64,000 nucleotides of DNA from Hyaloraphidium curvatum SAG 235-1. Lineage: Eukaryota; Fungi; Monoblepharomycota. The DNA is taken from assembly GCA_025558095.1 (NCBI GenBank), contig JAIVFI010000016.1:124001-188000 (forward strand), read 5' to 3'. The translations under genes were made by a program, and so were the position numbers. Positions within the stretch are counted from its first letter, which is position 1, and each line of letters starts with the position of its first letter. Shown here one piece after another: positions 14,897 to 37,872 of this stretch. The notes beneath the pieces were generated by a model, which worked only from the letters and a program-made list of their open reading frames with translations, was not told the DNA's origin and did no database searches.

Positions 14897-15028
14897 TTTG
14901 TCCCGAACTCGCTGGACAGGTGCAGGCGGGGCAAGGGATCCGGACCCAAACAAACAGCCTGGGTTCGCTAACCCAGCAGCACCGCCCACGTGCGCCCAAA
15001 CAACGCTGCATTCCCGGGGGGCGCCGCC

Positions 15029-17107
15029 ATGTCCCGCGTGTACCTGGCCGACAGCGACGACGACGAGGCGCCGGGCATCCGGTGGCACGCGCAGCCCGTG
15101 GACCGCAAGTACCACTCGCGGGCGCCCGCCGCGTCGGACCGCGGGTCCCCGCTGGTGCGCCGCCGCATGCAGCGCTGGCTGTGGACCGCGGCGGTGCTCG
15201 GCGCCCTCGCGCTCGCCTTCTTCGGCGGGCTGCCGCTGCCGCTCCTCGGCGGGGCCGGCGACCCCGCGCTGCCCGCGCCCGGCGAGGCCGAGAACGCCCT
15301 GCGGCTGGCCGCAATGGACGCGCAGGGCGCCGGCGACGCAAAGGCCTCGCTCAAGGGGCCCCGCTCGGGCCACCCGGACCGCCTGCAGCCGCACGTCCCG
15401 CAGCACGCGGCCGGGCGCACCCCTTCCCATGTGGAGCACGCCCCGCGGCCCGCTGCACCCCCCGCCGAGGACGAAGACCGGGCGCCCGCCGCGCAGAACG
15501 ATGGGGAGGAGGACGCCGAGGAGGAAACAACCGGGGAGGGCACCGAGGACGCCATCCCCGCGGACTCGCGCCCCGACTCGCACTCGGACGCCCACCGCGA
15601 CGAGGGCGAAACGCGGGGCAGGGTGCAGGTCGTCTCCGGCGGCGGCGAGTCGCCCTCCGCCGCCGCCCCCGAGCCCGCCGACGCCGCGGCCGACGACGAG
15701 GAGCAGGAAGCCGGGCGCCCCGCGACGGCGGCGCAGAAGGCGCTCAAGGCCGTGCACGCCCATTCGAAATCGCTCAAGGGGAACGTGCTGGGGAGGGACG
15801 AGGAGGCGGTTGTCGTCGGGGACCACAGGAATGCGGGCAAGGCGGGCAAGGGGGCCGCGGGTGCTGCGGCCGCCGAGGCCGAGGCCGGGTTGGAGGAGCA
15901 GGGCACCACGGGGAAGCGCGTGGTGACGGGCAGGCCCGCCGCCAGGCTTTCGGACGCCTCGGGATCGGACGGTTCGGCGGAGCTGGCCTCGGGTTCCCTT
16001 CCGGCGGGCAACACGCTCGCGGGCAAGGACGCCGCCGGCACCGCCGCGGGCGCCGACGCGGCCCCGGAACCCGCCTCGGAGCACGCCAAGCTGCGCGGCG
16101 CCCTGCCCCCGCCGGACCCGGTCGCCGGCACGGAAAAGAAGGGCAAGGGCATCGCGGCGGGGGCGAGCAAGGGCACGGTTGCGGCGCTGGACCGGGCGGA
16201 TGGGGACCCCGCGACGGGCAAGGAGGATGCGGCTTCGCCCCCGGACAGGCCGTCGTCGGCAAAGGACATCTCGGCCTCGAAGGCGGCCTCGACCGGCGAC
16301 GCCGATCCCGACGCCGGATCCGCGGGCCCCGACGCCGACGGGCGCAGGGAATCCGCGCGGCAGGCGGCGGAAAAGGCCTCGGTGCGGCTGGCGCCCTCTT
16401 CGGCGGCGGACGACACCGAAGGGGTGAAGGTGGAGGGCACGGGGAGGGGGCTGAGGAAGCTCGAGGGGGCGGGGGACAAGGCGGACGACGGGGCGGAGGC
16501 GGAGGAGGGGGCGGTGACGGGCGGGAAAGGGGGCAAGGATGCGGAGGACGCGACTGCGGGCGCGACGAAAGCTGCGGGCGCGGGGAAGGCGGAGGACCTC
16601 GGCGCGGACGGCGCGGACGTCAAGGCCGGCGGTTCCGGAACGGCGTCGTCGGCGGGCACCGTTGCGGCGAATGGGGCGGCGACCGCAGGCAGCGCGGCGG
16701 ACGAGGAGCCCACCACCGACGGGGAGACCATAGCCAGCGCGGGGGCCAAGGCGAGGGTGGTGAGCAAGGCGGACAAGGAGGACGCGAAGGCAGACCAGGT
16801 GGAAGCGAAGGCAGGCAAGGAGCTCGCGACGGCGGACAAGGATGATGCGACGACGGAGAAGGAGGACAAGAAGTCCGGCACGGAGGGCAAGGCGGACGGC
16901 GAGTCCAAGCCTAATGCAGAAGACGCCTCCGAGGACGCTGCGGACGCGTCCGAGGACAAGCCAGCCACCGCAGGGAAGACGGCCTCTGCGAGCAAGGCTG
17001 CCATGGCGGGCAAGGCCGAGGAGGAGAAGGCATCCGGGGAGGGGGAGGCCGGAGAGGAGGCGGCCGGGGACGACAAGGGCGAGGAGGAGAAGCCGGCGGA
17101 GGAGTAG
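15029..17107 (+). CDS. Single-pass membrane protein with long Ala/Gly/Asp/Glu/Lys low-complexity region
   Basis: ATG in GCCGCCATG context; basic stretch then [21 protein letters not shown]; long disordered tail. Confidence 0.7.
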
Positions 17108-17651
17108 GCCGTGTGGGTTTAGCTCGCAGATGGATGGTCATTACCCGTGTGTCTTATTTGTGATGCTATCGGTTCCTTTTGCGTTCAACTCGGCATGCTG
17201 GTCCCAGGTTTTCCTGGGATATCGGACTTCCGCCACACAGTTTGGCTTTCTACGTCACGCTCCAGCCGCCCGCCGCCCTCCCCGGCGTCCTCGCTCGCGA
17301 ATCGCCGCCCGCAGAGGACTTGGGACCGAAGATTTGTCTCCGGCGGTCACGTTTTGCGTTCTCCTTGGCCCAACCCCGGTTCCAGGCGCCAGCCGGTGGG
17401 ACTGCGACACACGGATTGTGACTTCGACGTAGGACACCCGAGCCCCCGCGTTCCTCAACGCTGAGCCGAACGGATCTCCGCCTCCTCGCGGAGAGCAACT
17501 GGCATCCAAAGAGAGAGGAAACGCTGCCAGACCGGCGACAGCAACTGGGGAATCTTGGGCGGTGGCAGCCTTCGTCTGAGTCAACCGCGCGGAGCCATTC
17601 TTGAGCCTCCGCAACCACATGCAGCGTTTAGCGATGCCATGTTTGGAGTCG

Positions 17652-20600
17652 ATGGGCTCTGGGCACCCATCTGTGGTGCAGAGACTAGGTCTGACGCCGG
17701 GACCAGTGGCATTCCCCCTTGATTCTAACGGGATATGCCTACTAGAGTACCGGAAACGGGTTTTCCTCACCATAGTGCTCACGGCTGGGCTGCTTGCCCT
17801 CCTAGCCGCCGCCATTCCGCGCGTGGGCGCGGTCCCCGCTCTCGCATTCGTCTCGCCGCTCGCCCCCGTGAACAACTCAAGACGACTGAATGGCCGACAG
17901 ATCGATACGGCGTGCGGTTGGATCAACAAGGGCGAGGAGTGCTGCCCCTGGGGCCAAATTTGCCCCGCCGGCAGCGAGTGCTACAGCACAGGTCAGATGT
18001 CGACGAGGCGATGCAGAGTTGCGGGACAGTCGTGCCCCTCGGGACAGAGGTTTTGCAGTTTCGTGTGCACCAACTTGGACACTTCGATGAACAACTGTGG
18101 TTCCTGCGGCCATACATGCGGAGGAAGCAGCGAAGCTGATTGGTATTGCTCTGGAGGTGGGCACGGATGACTTTGCGCGAGCTGAAAGCTGACGAGAACG
18201 CAACAGGTGAATGTAAGTACAGCTGCAAACCGCCGGTGTGTGCTCCAGGTCAAATGGTGGCCTCTGCGATGGCAATGTGTCCCTATTGCGTAAGCTACGT
18301 CTGATCACTTTTGGTCGCCCGATGATTAATGTTATCCGAAGCGAGAGTGTGGTAATGGGAAGTACAACTGCGGGCCTTCTGGGACCAATAACTGTGTCGA
18401 TCGGACCACGGACAACCAACATGTGGGTTGCGTGCGGAATTGCCCTGATGACACCTACGTAGGGCATCCTCTTCAGTGTGGCTCGTGTGGAAATGCATGC
18501 CCTTCCTCTTCGACGGTAAGCTCATCAACCTACAGGTTCATGTGAAGTCTAAAGCGATCCTCACGGCACAGTGTACGAATGGTGTCTGTCGATCTACTGA
18601 TCCTTGTGCCGGCATCAATTGTGGCTCATATTCTTCCTGCTCTGCGGGCCGCTGTTCTTGTAATTCTGGTTACTCGTCCCCCAGCGGGGATGGCAGGAAC
18701 TGCGAACCTATTGATCCTTGCCGGGGCATCAATTGTGGTGACTATTCCTCATGCTCAGGCGGAAAGTGCACGTGCAATCCGGGCTATGAATCTACAACCG
18801 GGGACGGGAAGAACTGCCGCGGAATCGATCCGTGCCGAGGCATCAACTGCGGCGACTACTCCTCGTGCTCGGGCGGCAAATGCACCTGCAACCCCGGCTA
18901 CGAGTCGCCGTCCGGAGATGGAAAGAACTGTGCACCGGTCAACCCATGCCGAGGCATCAACTGCGGTGACTACTCGTCGTGCTCGGGCGGCAAATGTACC
19001 TGCAACCCGGGATACGAGTCGCCGTCCGGAGACGGAAAGGGCTGCATCGTTATTGACAAGTGCCGCGGCATCACCTGCCCGTCTGGCCAAGTGGTGAGCC
19101 TTTGCGGTTCAATTGCAGGCGCTCTGAGCTAATCCACGACTGTTTGGCCCGCAGTGCTCCAACGGCGGCTGCGTCTGTTCTTCCGGCCTCACGTCCTGCG
19201 GTGGGAGCTGCATCAATCTCAACTCCGACTCGCGCAACTGCGGCGCTTGTGCAACTTCATGCCCCGACGGCCAATCCTGCTCTTCGGGACGCTGCGTGTG
19301 CCCGAGCGGCCTCACGAACTGCAACGGATTCTGCGTCTCGGTCGACTCGGACAGGAACCATTGCGGGCGGTGCGAAAACGCCTGTGCCGCGGATTCGACG
19401 GGCTGCTCCTCAGGCACGTGCCAGTTCCGACCCACCTGCGGCTCGGGGCAGACCAACTGCGGCTCCGAGACCTCTCTCAACTGCGTGGTGCTCGATTCGG
19501 ACCTGAAGAACTGCGGAGCCTGCGGGTCTGCTTGTCCGAGCGGGCAGATTGTGAGTAGAATGGGCGTGCTGCCGCGGCTCGTGTCTGACGAAGCCCGCGC
19601 TGCTCCAGTGCTCCTCAGGAAGGTGCGGCTGCCCGAACGGGCTCACGGCCTGCGGCTCGGCCTGCGTGAGCACGAACTCCGACATCAATCACTGCGGACA
19701 ATGCAACAGCGCATGCGGATCGGGGGCGACGGGGTGCGTGAACGGGGCTTGCCAGATCCCGGCTGCTCCTTCCCCATCTCCTCCCCCGCCGCCGGCGTCC
19801 ACCACGACGACGTCGTCTCCGCCGCCTCCTGGTACGACTCGTACCTCAGCAGCGCCAGCAACGTCATCGGCGTCGACAACCTCCAGTTCGGCGTCAACAA
19901 CGACCGCGACTCTGGTCTTCGCCAGCCCTCCGACCGCAGCTGTGGCTGCCCCAGCTGGAGCCACACCTCTGTCCCTCTCTGCCGGCTCCCGCATCTTTCT
20001 GACCGCGGGATCAAGAGGCTTGTCGTGCAACCCCGACTGCGTTCTCGCGGATGGGTCATCCGGCGAGTACGCCGTAGCGGGGGTCGCCGGCTCCTCGGCC
20101 ATCAGGCTGCAGCGCGGATCGTCTTGCCTCCAAGCGCGGCAGTCGGGCTCTTCCTTCTCCGTCGTGGATTGGAGCTGCCCGGCCTCGCCGGCAAGGCTCC
20201 AGAAGCGGCAGGCCGGATCGCAGCTATTCCCGTACTGGGCGCTCTTCAACTCCTCGTCGGGCTCGCTCATGATCATGAACGCCAACGTCGACGCTTCGTC
20301 TGGCTGCCTCCAGCCCTCGTCGGGTAGCAGTGTCTCGCTTGGCTCCTGTTCGACGGCGGCTGCATCCCAGTGGACCTCTCCCGGCTCCACCCCCCCGGCA
20401 CCTTCGTCTTCGTCGTCCAGCAACATTGGCGCCATCGTCGGCGGGGTGGTCGGCGGCGTCGTCGCCCTGGCTGCGGCGGGTGGAATCGCCTACTACGTGC
20501 GACGGAAGCAGCGCGCCAAAGGGCTCGAGGGCGCCGGAGATGACGCGGCGTCCAGCCTCGACGGCAGCGAATCGGACCACGCCAAGCCGCCCAAGCCGGC

Positions 20601-21969
20601 TATCGGCCTCGCATCCCAAGATACTCTCGCGTTCCCAACGGAAGCAATCAAGCCCGCGGCGCCGAAACCCGAGGGGCCCGAACCGGCTCCTCAGCCTGCC
20701 GCGCTTTCGCAGCCTGTTGTCGCCCCCAAGAGTCCAACAATCAACGCAGTCGACGAAGTAGCTGCTGTGGCACCACCTGCCGCCGCCGATCGACTCTCCA
20801 AGGACACCAAATCGACCTCGGATGGCTCGCAAAAGACCGCCACGATGTCTCGAACGCCGATTCCGAGCCCGACTCCAACGCAGAACTTCGCTCCGGTCGT
20901 CGGCATATCCGGATCCGGCGCCACCAACCCCGACGCCGCAGTCCCCCGCCAATCTTCGGGCAGCGGGGCCGGCGCCGTGGCCATCAACATCTCCCCCTCG
21001 GCCTCCAAGCTGCTGATCAGCAAGGACGACATCTCGATCGACAGAAACCAGCGCCTCGGCGAGGGCGGCTTCGGCGTCGTGTACGTCGGCACCCTCCGCG
21101 GTTCAACCAAGGTCGCGGTCAAGACGATCAAGGGCGACCTGGACGACAGGACCATGGCGGCGTTCGTCAAGGAGGTGGCCAACTGGGAAGGACTCGTGCA
21201 GCGAAACGGTGAGTTGATCGTCGGCGCAGATACACAGCGCGCTGACCCGCGTCCCGAAGTGCTCCCTCTGATGGCCTTCTGCGTCTCGCCGCCGATGATG
21301 GTGATGGACCTGATCGAGGAGGGCAACATGCGCAAGTACCTCGGCGCGCGCGGCTGGGACCAGGCCCTGGGGCGGCGGTTCCTGCACGACGTGGCCTGCG
21401 GCATGGCGTACCTTCACGCGTCGGGGATCCTGCACGGAGATCTCAAGAGGTCAGTTGCGCGCCGTTCCGCGGGGTCGAAGTGCTCATCCGGTTCCTCCTC
21501 CCAGCCTCAACGTCCTCGTCGACGGCCTCCGCGCCGTCATCACCGACTTTGGCCTCTCCCGCGTCCGGCTCGAGGTCAGCAAGTCGACCGCGCGCACCGG
21601 CAACGGCATGCAGGGCACGCCCGGCTTCGTGCCGCCCGAGATGCTCACGGGCGGGGTACTCAAGCCGCCCGGGGACGTGTACGCCTTTGCGATGCTCTGC
21701 TACGAGGTGGTCAGCAAGGGGAGGTATCCCTTCGACGACTTGACCAACATCGCCGCGGTAAGCTCCGTGCTCGATCCGCGGGAATTGCCCACTTACAGGC
21801 GCCGCCCGCGCAGATCGTCTACAAGGTTGCTTTTGAGCGGCGGCGACCCGTCCGACCCGAGGGCGTGCCCGACGCAATGTGGGAGCTCATGGAGCGCGCT
21901 TGGGCTCACGAGCCCCTCTCGCGGCCCGACTTTGTCGAGCTCGAGAAGGAGACGGCGAAGCTCATGTAG
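17652..21969 (+). CDS. Receptor-like Ser/Thr kinase (TKL group) with STIG1-like and EGF-like Cys-rich repeats, Ser/Thr/Pro stalk, ricin-B-like module and one TM
   Basis: Signal-like hydrophobic N-term; about six C..L.SD..NCG.C...C repeats; 4x38-aa EGF-like units; TM IGAIVGGVVGGVVALAAAGGIAYYV-RRK; kinase GEGGFG, VAVK, HGDLKSLN, DFG, GTPGFVPPE, DVYAF; about 10 GT-AG introns; exact start uncertain (17619-17652). Confidence 0.85.
18599..19054 (+). repeat. Coding tandem repeat, 4 x 114 bp (EGF-like unit)
   Basis: DPCRGINCGDYSSCSGGKCTCNPGYESPSGDGKNC units starting at 18599, 18713, 18827, 18941. Confidence 0.95.
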
Positions 21970-22159
21970 GGAGGGAGGGACGAAGCAAGTGCCCCTGCAG
22001 AGTGACATGAAGCTATGTATCTTTATCATCGCGAGGCTAAAATGTGCGCACTGGCTTCAGTAGCTTTGTTCTCTCCTCGTGATTTGAGGGGAGGTCGGCG
22101 AGCTCGATCCCGTCTCGCGGCTCGGAATCATCTAGCAATCTGCCGCCGCGGCCAGAAAC

Positions 22160-22867
22160 ATGTCCGAGCCACATGCGCCCGTGGGAAGAACGACAAAAGC
22201 GCGGCACCGAAGCGCGCCCGCGGCGTCGGACCCCGATGGCCCGGCCGGAGCGCGCAACGCGGACTCGGAGGGCGCGAACGCGTCCGCCTTGGACACCGCC
22301 GGAAACCGCACCGAGGGGCCCGAAGATGCCCCGCCGGGCGCGCAGAACGCGCGAATGACATCGTTCGACGCGGTTGCGGGCTCGCAGCCGGCCTTGGAGT
22401 CTCTGTCGGCCCCTGCGGAACCCCCGCCGGCGGGCCTCGCCGCGCACCCCCCGACCTCCGCCTTGCTCTTCGAGCGCACGACCTCCAACACCTCCCTCGG
22501 CTCGTGGCTCCTCGTGAACCCTTCGGCCGCGCCTGCGCTGCCCCCGCCCGTGCCGCAGGCCGTGCCCGCGGATGACCCGGACATGCCCTCGGAGGAGCTC
22601 TGCAAGATCTGCCTCTCGGCGCCCATACAGACGGCCCTGGTTCCTTGCGGTCATTCTTGCATGTGCATTGCGTGTGCGAGGGGCGCGGTGTCGTACTTTG
22701 CCCCCGGTGGGGAGGAAACGGACCAGGAGCGGACCCAACCAGCGGAGGAGAGCGTTCTCGGGCGGGTCGTGGGCGCGGCGGTCGGGGTCCTCGGCGTAGG
22801 CTGGAGAGGAAGGTGTCCAGTGTGCAGATCACCGGTGCGGGAGGTAGTCAGGGTCTACCGGGTGTGA
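22160..22867 (+). CDS. C3HC4 RING-finger protein (IAP/MGRN-type C-terminal RING)
   Basis: CKIC...LVPCGH.CMC..CA-(~45-aa insert)-CPVCR..V...RVY. Confidence 0.8.
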   Translation: MSEPHAPVGRTTKARHRSAPAASDPDGPAGARNADSEGANASALDTAGNRTEGPEDAPPGAQNARMTSFDAVAGSQPALESLSAPAEPPPAGLAAHPPTSALLFERTTSNTSLGSWLLVNPSAAPALPPPVPQAVPADDPDMPSEELCKICLSAPIQTALVPCGHSCMCIACARGAVSYFAPGGEETDQERTQPAEESVLGRVVGAAVGVLGVGWRGRCPVCRSPVREVVRVYRV

Positions 22868-37557: not shown

Positions 37558-37692
37558 ACGGCGTACTCGCCGGATGACCCGTCCGCGAGCACGCAGTCGG
37601 CGTTGCACGACAAGCCCCTCGATCCCGCGGTCAGAAAGATGCGGGAGCCGGCAGATAAGGACAGAGGTGTAGCCCCGGCTGGAGCAGCCACA
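37558..37692 (-). repeat. Inverted dispersed copy of receptor-kinase ectodomain segment 19941-20075
   Basis: VAAPAGATPLSLSAGSRIFLTAGSRGLSCN(P/A)DCVLADGSSGEYAV; about 91% nt identity. Confidence 0.95.
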
Positions 37693-37872
37693 GGTTCCGC
37701 GATCGCTCACCAGGACCACAGGGATCGAGTGCACCGCGATCACCAAGACCGACGAGGCAGCGGAGAACGAGGGTGGGGCTGGAAAGGAGGAGAGGTCGAA
37801 ACACTGGCTACATACACTTTACTGCCTTGCCGCTGCCTGGACTCAAGAACCCGAATGCTACCCCGACGATGC

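Follow-up and report, generated by a model that had tools for sequence, protein, structure and literature searches.

A putative single-pass receptor kinase with a cysteine-repeat, EGF-like and beta-trefoil ectodomain in the fungus Hyaloraphidium curvatum

Background

Receptor kinases are usually considered scarce in fungi. In 18 fungi surveyed, no more than 54 transmembrane kinases were counted, IRE1 and histidine kinases making up most of them (PMC10463195), and leucine-rich repeat (LRR) receptor-like kinases (RLKs), a few of which have been described from chytrids and zygomycetes, are for the most part absent from Dikarya (PMC13618815). In this work we focused on Hyaloraphidium curvatum SAG 235-1 and on a stretch of 64,000 nucleotides of its genome (contig JAIVFI010000016.1, positions 124,001 to 188,000), hereafter called the window. 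A gene lying on the plus strand at positions 17652-21969 of this window probably codes for a type-I receptor protein kinase with a single membrane pass, composed of cysteine-rich repeats, EGF-like units, a Ser/Thr/Pro-rich stalk, a predicted beta-trefoil, one transmembrane helix and a kinase domain.

In plants, wall-associated kinases (WAKs) combine EGF repeats with a transmembrane segment and a Ser/Thr kinase, and a non-RD catalytic loop is common in many pattern-recognition receptors (PRRs). Plant RLKs such as the WAKs and the lectin-RLKs share with the window gene the single membrane pass, the EGF-like or lectin-like ectodomain, the Ser/Thr-type loop and an expansion driven by duplication. 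However, the best solved relatives of the window kinase are animal tyrosine kinases (TKs) and CTR1 rather than plant RLK/IRAK kinases, and its ectodomain modules (Stig1/MXAN repeats and trefoil) are not those of the WAKs. On sequence grounds, an origin independent of the plant RLKs is likely.

Other described systems resemble the window gene in part. The LRR receptor-like kinases of chytrids (PMC13618815, its references 261-263) are also receptor kinases of early-diverging fungi, but the window gene carries a Cys-repeat, EGF and trefoil ectodomain. The FslK kinases of Agaricomycetes (PMC3937382) combine, like the window kinase, an overall similarity to TKs with Ser/Thr-type motifs; compared by their description, and unlike the window gene, most of them have neither additional domains nor a transmembrane helix. 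Transmembrane kinases with Cys-rich repeats resembling those of the Gal/GalNAc lectin are attributed to Entamoeba histolytica by Beck et al. (2005), as cited in PMC10463195. By this cited description alone they would be analogous to the window family in forming a set of many single-pass kinases, the ectodomains of which are arrays of short Cys-rich repeats, in an unrelated lineage.

In the literature searched, no paper joined Hyaloraphidium with receptor and kinase and no description of this architecture was found. Searches on Stig1 and on receptor kinases in early-diverging fungi returned no such architecture either, and in these searches the possibility that it had already been described, raised when the locus was first outlined in a preliminary description, was not borne out.

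Results and discussion

A single intact gene under constraint

Three-frame translation and direct reading of positions 17500-22100 gave a single gene of nine exons and eight introns, with an ATG at 17652 and a TAG stop codon at 21967-21969, exactly the ends given in the preliminary description. All eight introns are 50-61 nucleotides (nt) long, start with a GT(R/C)(A/G)G-like sequence and end with AG, and CTNAC-type branch sites lie 15-25 nt before the acceptors. The exon coordinates are listed in Table 1. Pfam, NCBIfam and fold searches were all run per exon or natural open reading frame (ORF).

Evidence for one receptor protein lies in exon 6, a 533-codon ORF (19609-21207) running without interruption through the last Cys repeat, the stalk, the trefoil, the transmembrane helix and the N-lobe of the kinase. 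Ectodomain, transmembrane helix and kinase N-lobe are joined in one ORF in six paralogues of the same genome as well, and the NCBI model of the paralogue on C3 (P0001, 1000 amino acids) contains Stig1 and kinase in one protein. In a homologous Logan contig (L009, from SRR26194948, GC content 53%), the region from the stalk to the kinase C-terminus is a single intronless ORF of 776 amino acids. At the places where introns 6, 7 and 8 interrupt the window gene, this ORF continues as LVQRNVLPLM, HGDLKSLNVL and NVAAVVYKVA, respectively, and therefore supports the three splice junctions of the kinase. The architecture of a single-pass receptor protein kinase (an ectodomain, one transmembrane helix and a eukaryotic protein kinase domain in one polypeptide) is thus present, in the domain order proposed at the outset.

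Compared with the closest paralogue, on C10, exons 4 to 9 are 72-88% identical at the nucleotide level and align without gaps, whereas introns 4 to 8 are only 38-51% identical, which supports the splice model. The juxtamembrane linker is 44% identical to that of the same paralogue. The ratio of nonsynonymous to synonymous substitution rates (dN/dS) against C10 is 0.15 over 634 codons. Taken together, the contrast between exons and introns and this low ratio indicate that the gene is intact and constrained by purifying selection in its outer as well as its inner part.

These data bear directly on the alternative that the Cys-rich part belongs to one gene and the kinase to its neighbour, or that the locus is a decaying pseudogene, which we regard as extremely improbable. 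At most, the absence of the window gene's own protein from the database matches speaks for it. Against it, the two-gene reading is excluded because ectodomain, transmembrane helix and kinase N-lobe occupy one uninterrupted exon, and it is contradicted by L009 as well; the same order recurs in seven paralogues and in L009, and the absence of frame breaks, together with the dN/dS value, argues against decay. Separate genes had been named beforehand as the result that would overturn the proposal.

Kinase domain

The PK_Tyr_Ser-Thr profile (PF07714) matched in collinear pieces on exons 6, 7, 8 and 9 (profile positions 3-55, 66-128, 132-210 and 214-256) and outscored Pkinase on every exon, as it did in L009 (177.5 versus 133.6 bits). 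The motifs GEGGFG, VAVK, KEV, HGDLKSLN, DFG, PPE and RPDF were read directly from the sequence and make up the motif set of an active eukaryotic protein kinase, from GxGxxG to the Arg of subdomain XI. Every catalytic residue is present, HGDLKSLN included, as had been claimed; this motif is split between HGDLK and SLN by intron 7. The motif CW-x6-RPxF, looked for as a mark of TKL kinases, reads AW-x6-RPDF in the window gene and CW-x6-RPTF in L009. Judged by these motifs, the catalytic core is complete and has a non-RD (HGD) loop of Ser/Thr type.

By its profile match and motifs the kinase is probably of TKL type. Beyond the clade its identity to named proteins is 27-37%, these being kinases of Agaricomycetes (proteins of Thelephora, Mycena, Leucoagaricus and Trametes, among the nearest named), oomycete "TKL/DRK" kinases and proteins of the chytrid Dinochytrium and of trichomonads; a few Logan proteins reach 44-54% in the kinase. 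A search of PDB sequences gave EGFR (122.7 bits), a Src/Abl ancestor, ABL1, ACK1 and CTR1 as the closest relatives of solved structure.

Membership of the TK group was considered and rejected. TKs are recognised by DL(R/A)A(A/R)N in subdomain VI and P(I/V)(K/R)W(T/M)APE in subdomain VIII (PMC3937382); the window kinase has HGDLKSLN in the loop and GTPGFVPPE at the P+1 position, although its best PDB matches are TKs. Because the best solved matches include EGFR and Abl while the motifs are of Ser/Thr type, we place the kinase near the border between TK and TKL, where it could inform how the receptor kinases of opisthokonts arose.

The conservation of the kinase also weighs on the idea that the protein serves mainly in adhesion or in cell-cell or substrate recognition, with a minor or scaffolding kinase. 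This idea draws on the frequent occurrence of EGF-like arrays and lectin-like trefoils in adhesins, on the non-RD loop, a class which often signals without activation-loop phosphorylation, and on the existence of a kinase-less paralogue (L007, protein P0002). We nevertheless consider it quite unlikely, given that conservation along the gene is highest in the kinase exons (86-88% nucleotide identity to the closest paralogue, dN/dS of 0.12-0.15) and that all catalytic residues are kept; this strong conservation disfavours a purely adhesive role.

Cysteine-rich repeats, EGF-like units and stalk

The preliminary description had counted about six STIG1-like repeats. A search with the pattern C..G...C...C......C(G/V).C...C found five canonical units, and a sixth, degenerate one lies in exon 3. 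The Pfam Stig1 profile (PF04885) matched three stretches of exon 5 with 53.5 bits, above its cutoff of 24.1, and remained below the cutoff on exon 6 (17.9 bits) and exon 1 (12.9 bits). The count of six therefore holds only if the degenerate unit is included, and the profile supports the repeats of exon 5.

A better match to exon 5 was given by NF041328, the NCBIfam profile of the MXAN_6577-like Cys-rich proteins (93.9 bits, E = 8.2e-27). This score lies just below the curated cutoff of 100 bits, so that exon 5 is not a member of that family; the repeat type is related. Since the repeats match NF041328 better than Stig1, they belong to a widespread type of disulfide repeat that is not specifically plant-like.

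In plants, STIG1 is a ligand of LePRK2, according to a reference in PMC4170102. Plant STIG1 peptides share with the window gene the repeat C..G...C...C......D..NCG.C...C, recognised by PF04885; unlike them, the window gene uses the repeat as a building block of the receptor, and its repeat is matched better by a myxobacterial Cys-rich family. The proposal that a repeat known from a plant ligand here forms the receptor itself stands insofar as the repeats are part of the receptor polypeptide, but the link to the plant ligand is weak.

The AlphaFold 2 (AF2) model of the exon 5 repeats (pLDDT 86) is an elongated rod of beta-hairpins. It has no convincing neighbour in the PDB: the best match, to cysteine-rich domains of TNFR type, has a Z-score of 2.4, and Foldseek returned nothing from the PDB at E ≤ 0.001. 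As modelled, the Stig1-type repeats form an elongated disulfide-rich rod, and we make no further claim on their fold.

Exon 4 contains the four near-identical EGF-like units that had been proposed; four were counted by pattern search, and cEGF (PF12662) matched four stretches with 60 bits, above its cutoff of 26.6. Three of the units lie in a 114-bp tandem array at 18719-19078 (3.2 copies, 79% matches by TRF). The sequence of the array is consistent with homogenisation within the gene. The synonymous divergence (dS) of the EGF exon from C10 is high (1.57), although the units inside the gene stay alike.

The proposed Ser/Thr/Pro stalk is present as well, with 66% of these three residues, and is probably O-glycosylated, judging by its composition.

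Beta-trefoil module

The module next to the membrane spans about 130 amino acids and has six conserved Cys residues (alignments A1 and A3). It had been described as ricin-B-like, a term which proved right for its predicted fold and not for its sequence. No Pfam match to Ricin-B or R-type lectin domains (PF00652, PF14200, CBM13) was obtained on exon 6 at E ≤ 1, and the A3 profile, built from 14 sequences, retrieved no lectin from the PDB sequences at E ≤ 10, only a chance match. Nor is the (QxW)3 signature present: QW is kept only in the last subdomain, and the middle one has PYW.

An AF2 model built from nine paralogues was of moderate quality (pLDDT 69.9, pTM 0.71). Its top VIA-align match was 3win_A (Z 10.0, rmsd 3.2, 113 residues aligned), followed by 2vsa_A (Z 9.8), and all 50 top entries, among them fungal lectins, IL-1 and FGF, were beta-trefoils, the last of them at Z 7.5. 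In a shape search of the ESM Atlas, ricin-type lectin clusters made up seven of the ten nearest rows, with a TM-score by query of 0.55-0.62, and the remaining three had no Pfam family in common. As no Foldseek match in the PDB reached E ≤ 0.001 (E-values of 0.1 or higher), the fold assignment rests on VIA-align and the Atlas shape search. By predicted fold, the six-Cys module is a beta-trefoil.

The trefoil is a rare module without a described function, its profile having found 28 proteins at E ≤ 0.001 in 1.84 billion representatives. The sources of 13 of the 28 were checked; the named ones were all H. curvatum, the others being Logan assemblies and one JGI metagenome. Pfam detected SH3 in nine of the 28, kinase in eight, Stig1 in three, LRR in three, NHL in one and cEGF in one, many of the 28 being ORF fragments of intron-containing genes.

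A conserved basic motif (KRQ, RRQ or RRS), LQKRQ in the window gene (20197-20211), lies in a mid-trefoil loop modelled with low confidence. Its Arg is invariant and usually found within KR or RR (A1, A3). Divergent relatives (L005, L006, P0006 and P0010) have loop inserts of 20-30 amino acids between two basic motifs. Judging by its sequence, this loop may be cut by a kexin-type protease, which would give a two-chain receptor.

Elsewhere in the window, on the minus strand at 37558-37693, lies a 136-bp relic with 92% DNA identity to the start of the trefoil at 19940-20075 (45 amino acids, 98%). Next to it lies a minus-strand ORF for a CAMK-like kinase. By sequence, the relic looks like the leftover of a recent partial duplication or gene conversion.

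A lineage-restricted family

Within the 31.9-Mb genome, the exon 8 peptide gave 112 kinase matches and the trefoil search found nine places. Seven loci have the full order of Cys/EGF arrays, trefoil, transmembrane helix and kinase: the window gene and those on C10, C3, C6, C8, C24 and C38. Two other relatives lack a kinase. One, on C47 (L007; G000:C47:3878-5956; NCBI DFJ74DRAFT_760618; P0002), has EGF, Stig1, trefoil, a transmembrane helix and a short tail, and could be a receptor-like protein, a co-receptor or a decoy; the other, on C39 (L008), has a trefoil, a transmembrane helix and an SH3 domain. The public proteins of the paralogues bear DFJ74DRAFT tags (DFJ74DRAFT_324043 for P0001, for example) and are labelled "hypothetical" or "kinase-like"; NCBI lists them under Hyaloraphidium curvatum, which bears out the origin of the gene from an early-diverging, chytrid fungus.

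The same type of transmembrane helix was found in 19 of the approximately 25 closest kinase loci checked, 190-570 amino acids before the kinase and in the same ORF. These 19 include two apparent duplicate pairs on C30 and C48, leaving about 17 distinct loci. The regions C30:50400-60900 and C48:1-13500 have matching kinase tblastn matches (L011/L020 and L012/L022), C48 being a small contig; L012 and L022 have the same identity and the same upstream transmembrane sequence. C48 may represent a haplotig that was left uncollapsed, or else a recent segmental duplication.

The paralogues L001-L006 and relatives from SRR26194948, SRR23967301 and JGI 3300050339 share with the window gene a chassis of trefoil, transmembrane helix and kinase, the kinases being 71-90% and the trefoils 27-83% identical. 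Stig1 and/or EGF arrays are present in most of them; the paralogues differ from the window gene in the numbers of Cys and EGF repeats, and some have an SH3 domain, which the window gene lacks. An SH3 domain between transmembrane helix and kinase, an unusual position for receptor kinases, was seen in L004 (C8), L006 (C38), L009 (10520-10690), P0006, P0019 and P0021. One of the Logan source organisms is a relative of H. curvatum, since its Brix protein is 76% identical to that of H. curvatum. In P0029 and others, the trefoil chassis bears an LRR head. Going by these sequences, the window gene belongs to a lineage-restricted family in which a shared trefoil-transmembrane-(SH3)-kinase chassis bears exchanged outer modules (Stig1/EGF, LRR or NHL).

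The locus had been presented as part of an undescribed receptor system. In the literature searched this holds for the architecture, but the gene is not a one-off, and LRR receptor kinases of chytrids have already been reported (PMC13618815). With at least seven receptor kinases of the Cys-repeat/EGF/trefoil type and about 17 or more distinct, related single-pass kinase loci, H. curvatum shows a signalling style that was open to early fungi, and the family offers a tractable gene set for asking what early-diverging fungi sense.

Putative function

The type-I topology is deduced from the hydrophobic leader, from the transmembrane helix followed by the basic sequence RRKQR, and from the occurrence of Cys residues only N-terminal of this helix. 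The leader, also kept in the paralogue L001 and in L009, is a probable signal peptide. The glycosylated stalk would keep both the rod of disulfide-rich repeats and the lectin-like trefoil off the membrane and through the cell wall. There the ectodomain could recognise a ligand outside the cell, for which a glycan or a polymer of the wall or surface is the most plausible candidate and a protein a less plausible one. Clustering driven by the ligand would then join the cytoplasmic kinases, and these might transfer phosphate to Ser/Thr residues of one another or of downstream partners. A role in surface sensing or adhesion, as first suggested, is what we infer from the sequence.

The same parts could be arranged otherwise. 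In a sensor of wall integrity or mechanical stress of the Wsc1/Mid2 type that has its own kinase, the Cys-rich head would be anchored in the wall, the stalk would act as a spring and strain, instead of a soluble ligand, would activate the kinase. Fungal wall sensors do have a Cys-rich head, a Ser/Thr/Pro-rich stalk, a single transmembrane helix and a cytoplasmic tail; the GxxxG-rich type of transmembrane helix is common in fungal surface sensors, and kinase-less (L007) and SH3-only (L008) relatives exist. However, no exon matched the WSC domain (PF01822) of Pfam at E ≤ 1, and the exchange of outer modules among paralogues (Stig1/EGF, LRR, NHL) fits ligand diversification better than one mechanical function. 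We hold such a sensor to be a serious but unlikely possibility, and favour ligand recognition because the outer modules are swapped on a constant chassis.

Several points weigh against a ligand-binding receptor kinase as proposed here. The hydrophobic core of the leader starts 36 residues past the first ATG, unless an additional in-frame intron of 57 nt that is possible in exon 1 (17689-17745, with a CTAAC branch site) is removed; the start codon and the position of signal-peptide cleavage are thus uncertain. The gene model draws solely on the genomic sequence and on the sequences of relatives, and the public annotation of the gene, the protein of which was missing from the database matches, may be absent or different. 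The lack of a Ricin_B sequence match and the single QxW mean that sugar binding by the trefoil is not established, and scaffolding could be the main function of a non-RD kinase.

A broader and more speculative view, which we consider improbable at present, is that monoblepharid-type chytrids independently built a diversified, PRR-like receptor-kinase system for the recognition of glycans or surface patterns of food, host or non-self. Its chassis would comprise a ricin-like trefoil processed in its loop, a GxxxG-rich transmembrane helix, an SH3 domain in some members, and a kinase of non-RD TKL type near the TK/TKL boundary, and its interchangeable recognition heads would be of Cys-repeat/EGF, LRR or NHL type. 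If true, receptor-kinase signalling would have been invented a third time, in fungi, in addition to animal receptor tyrosine kinases and plant RLKs.

Gene structure and neighbouring ORFs

Table 1. Exons and domains of the receptor kinase gene (positions in the window)
Feature	Positions	Strand	Content
Exon 1	17652-18156	+	Start codon, leader VFLTIVLTAGLLALLAAAI, first Cys-rich stretch, containing one Stig1-type unit (18033-18119)
Exon 2	18207-18289	+	Segment with 5 Cys; phase-compatible GT-AG introns; Cys spacing kept in L001
Exon 3	18348-18515	+	Degenerate Cys-rich unit, QCGSCGNAC at end; alternative acceptor 18341
Exon 4	18572-19093	+	Four EGF-like units at 18605-19045; cEGF 60 bits
Exon 5	19155-19550	+	Three Stig1-type / MXAN_6577-type Cys repeats
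Exon 6, first part	19609-19755	+	Last Stig1-type repeat
Exon 6, stalk	19756-19986	+	Ser/Thr/Pro-rich, 66% S/T/P
Exon 6, trefoil	19987-20385	+	Membrane-proximal six-Cys module, beta-trefoil by predicted fold; LQKRQ motif, one QxW
Exon 6, transmembrane helix	20404-20500	+	IGAIVGGVVGGVVALAAAGGIAYYV, then basic stop-transfer RRKQR; hydropathy scan
Exon 6, linker	20501-20990	+	Disordered cytoplasmic juxtamembrane region, about 165 amino acids, poorly conserved, without SH3; no Pfam match
Exon 6, end	20991-21208	+	Kinase subdomains I-III: GEGGFG, VAVK, helix-C E
Exon 7	21260-21449	+	Kinase subdomains IV to VIb, through HGDLK
Exon 8	21505-21757	+	Catalytic-loop SLN, DFG, activation segment, GTPGFVPPE
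Exon 9	21814-21969	+	Kinase subdomains X-XI (W-x6-RPxF), stop; acceptor chosen by comparison with intronless L009

Upstream of the gene, a 705-amino-acid ORF of low complexity, rich in Ala, Gly, Glu, Asp and Lys, lies on the plus strand at 14990-17107 in a stretch of 71-79% GC. Downstream, a RING-finger ORF begins at 22160.

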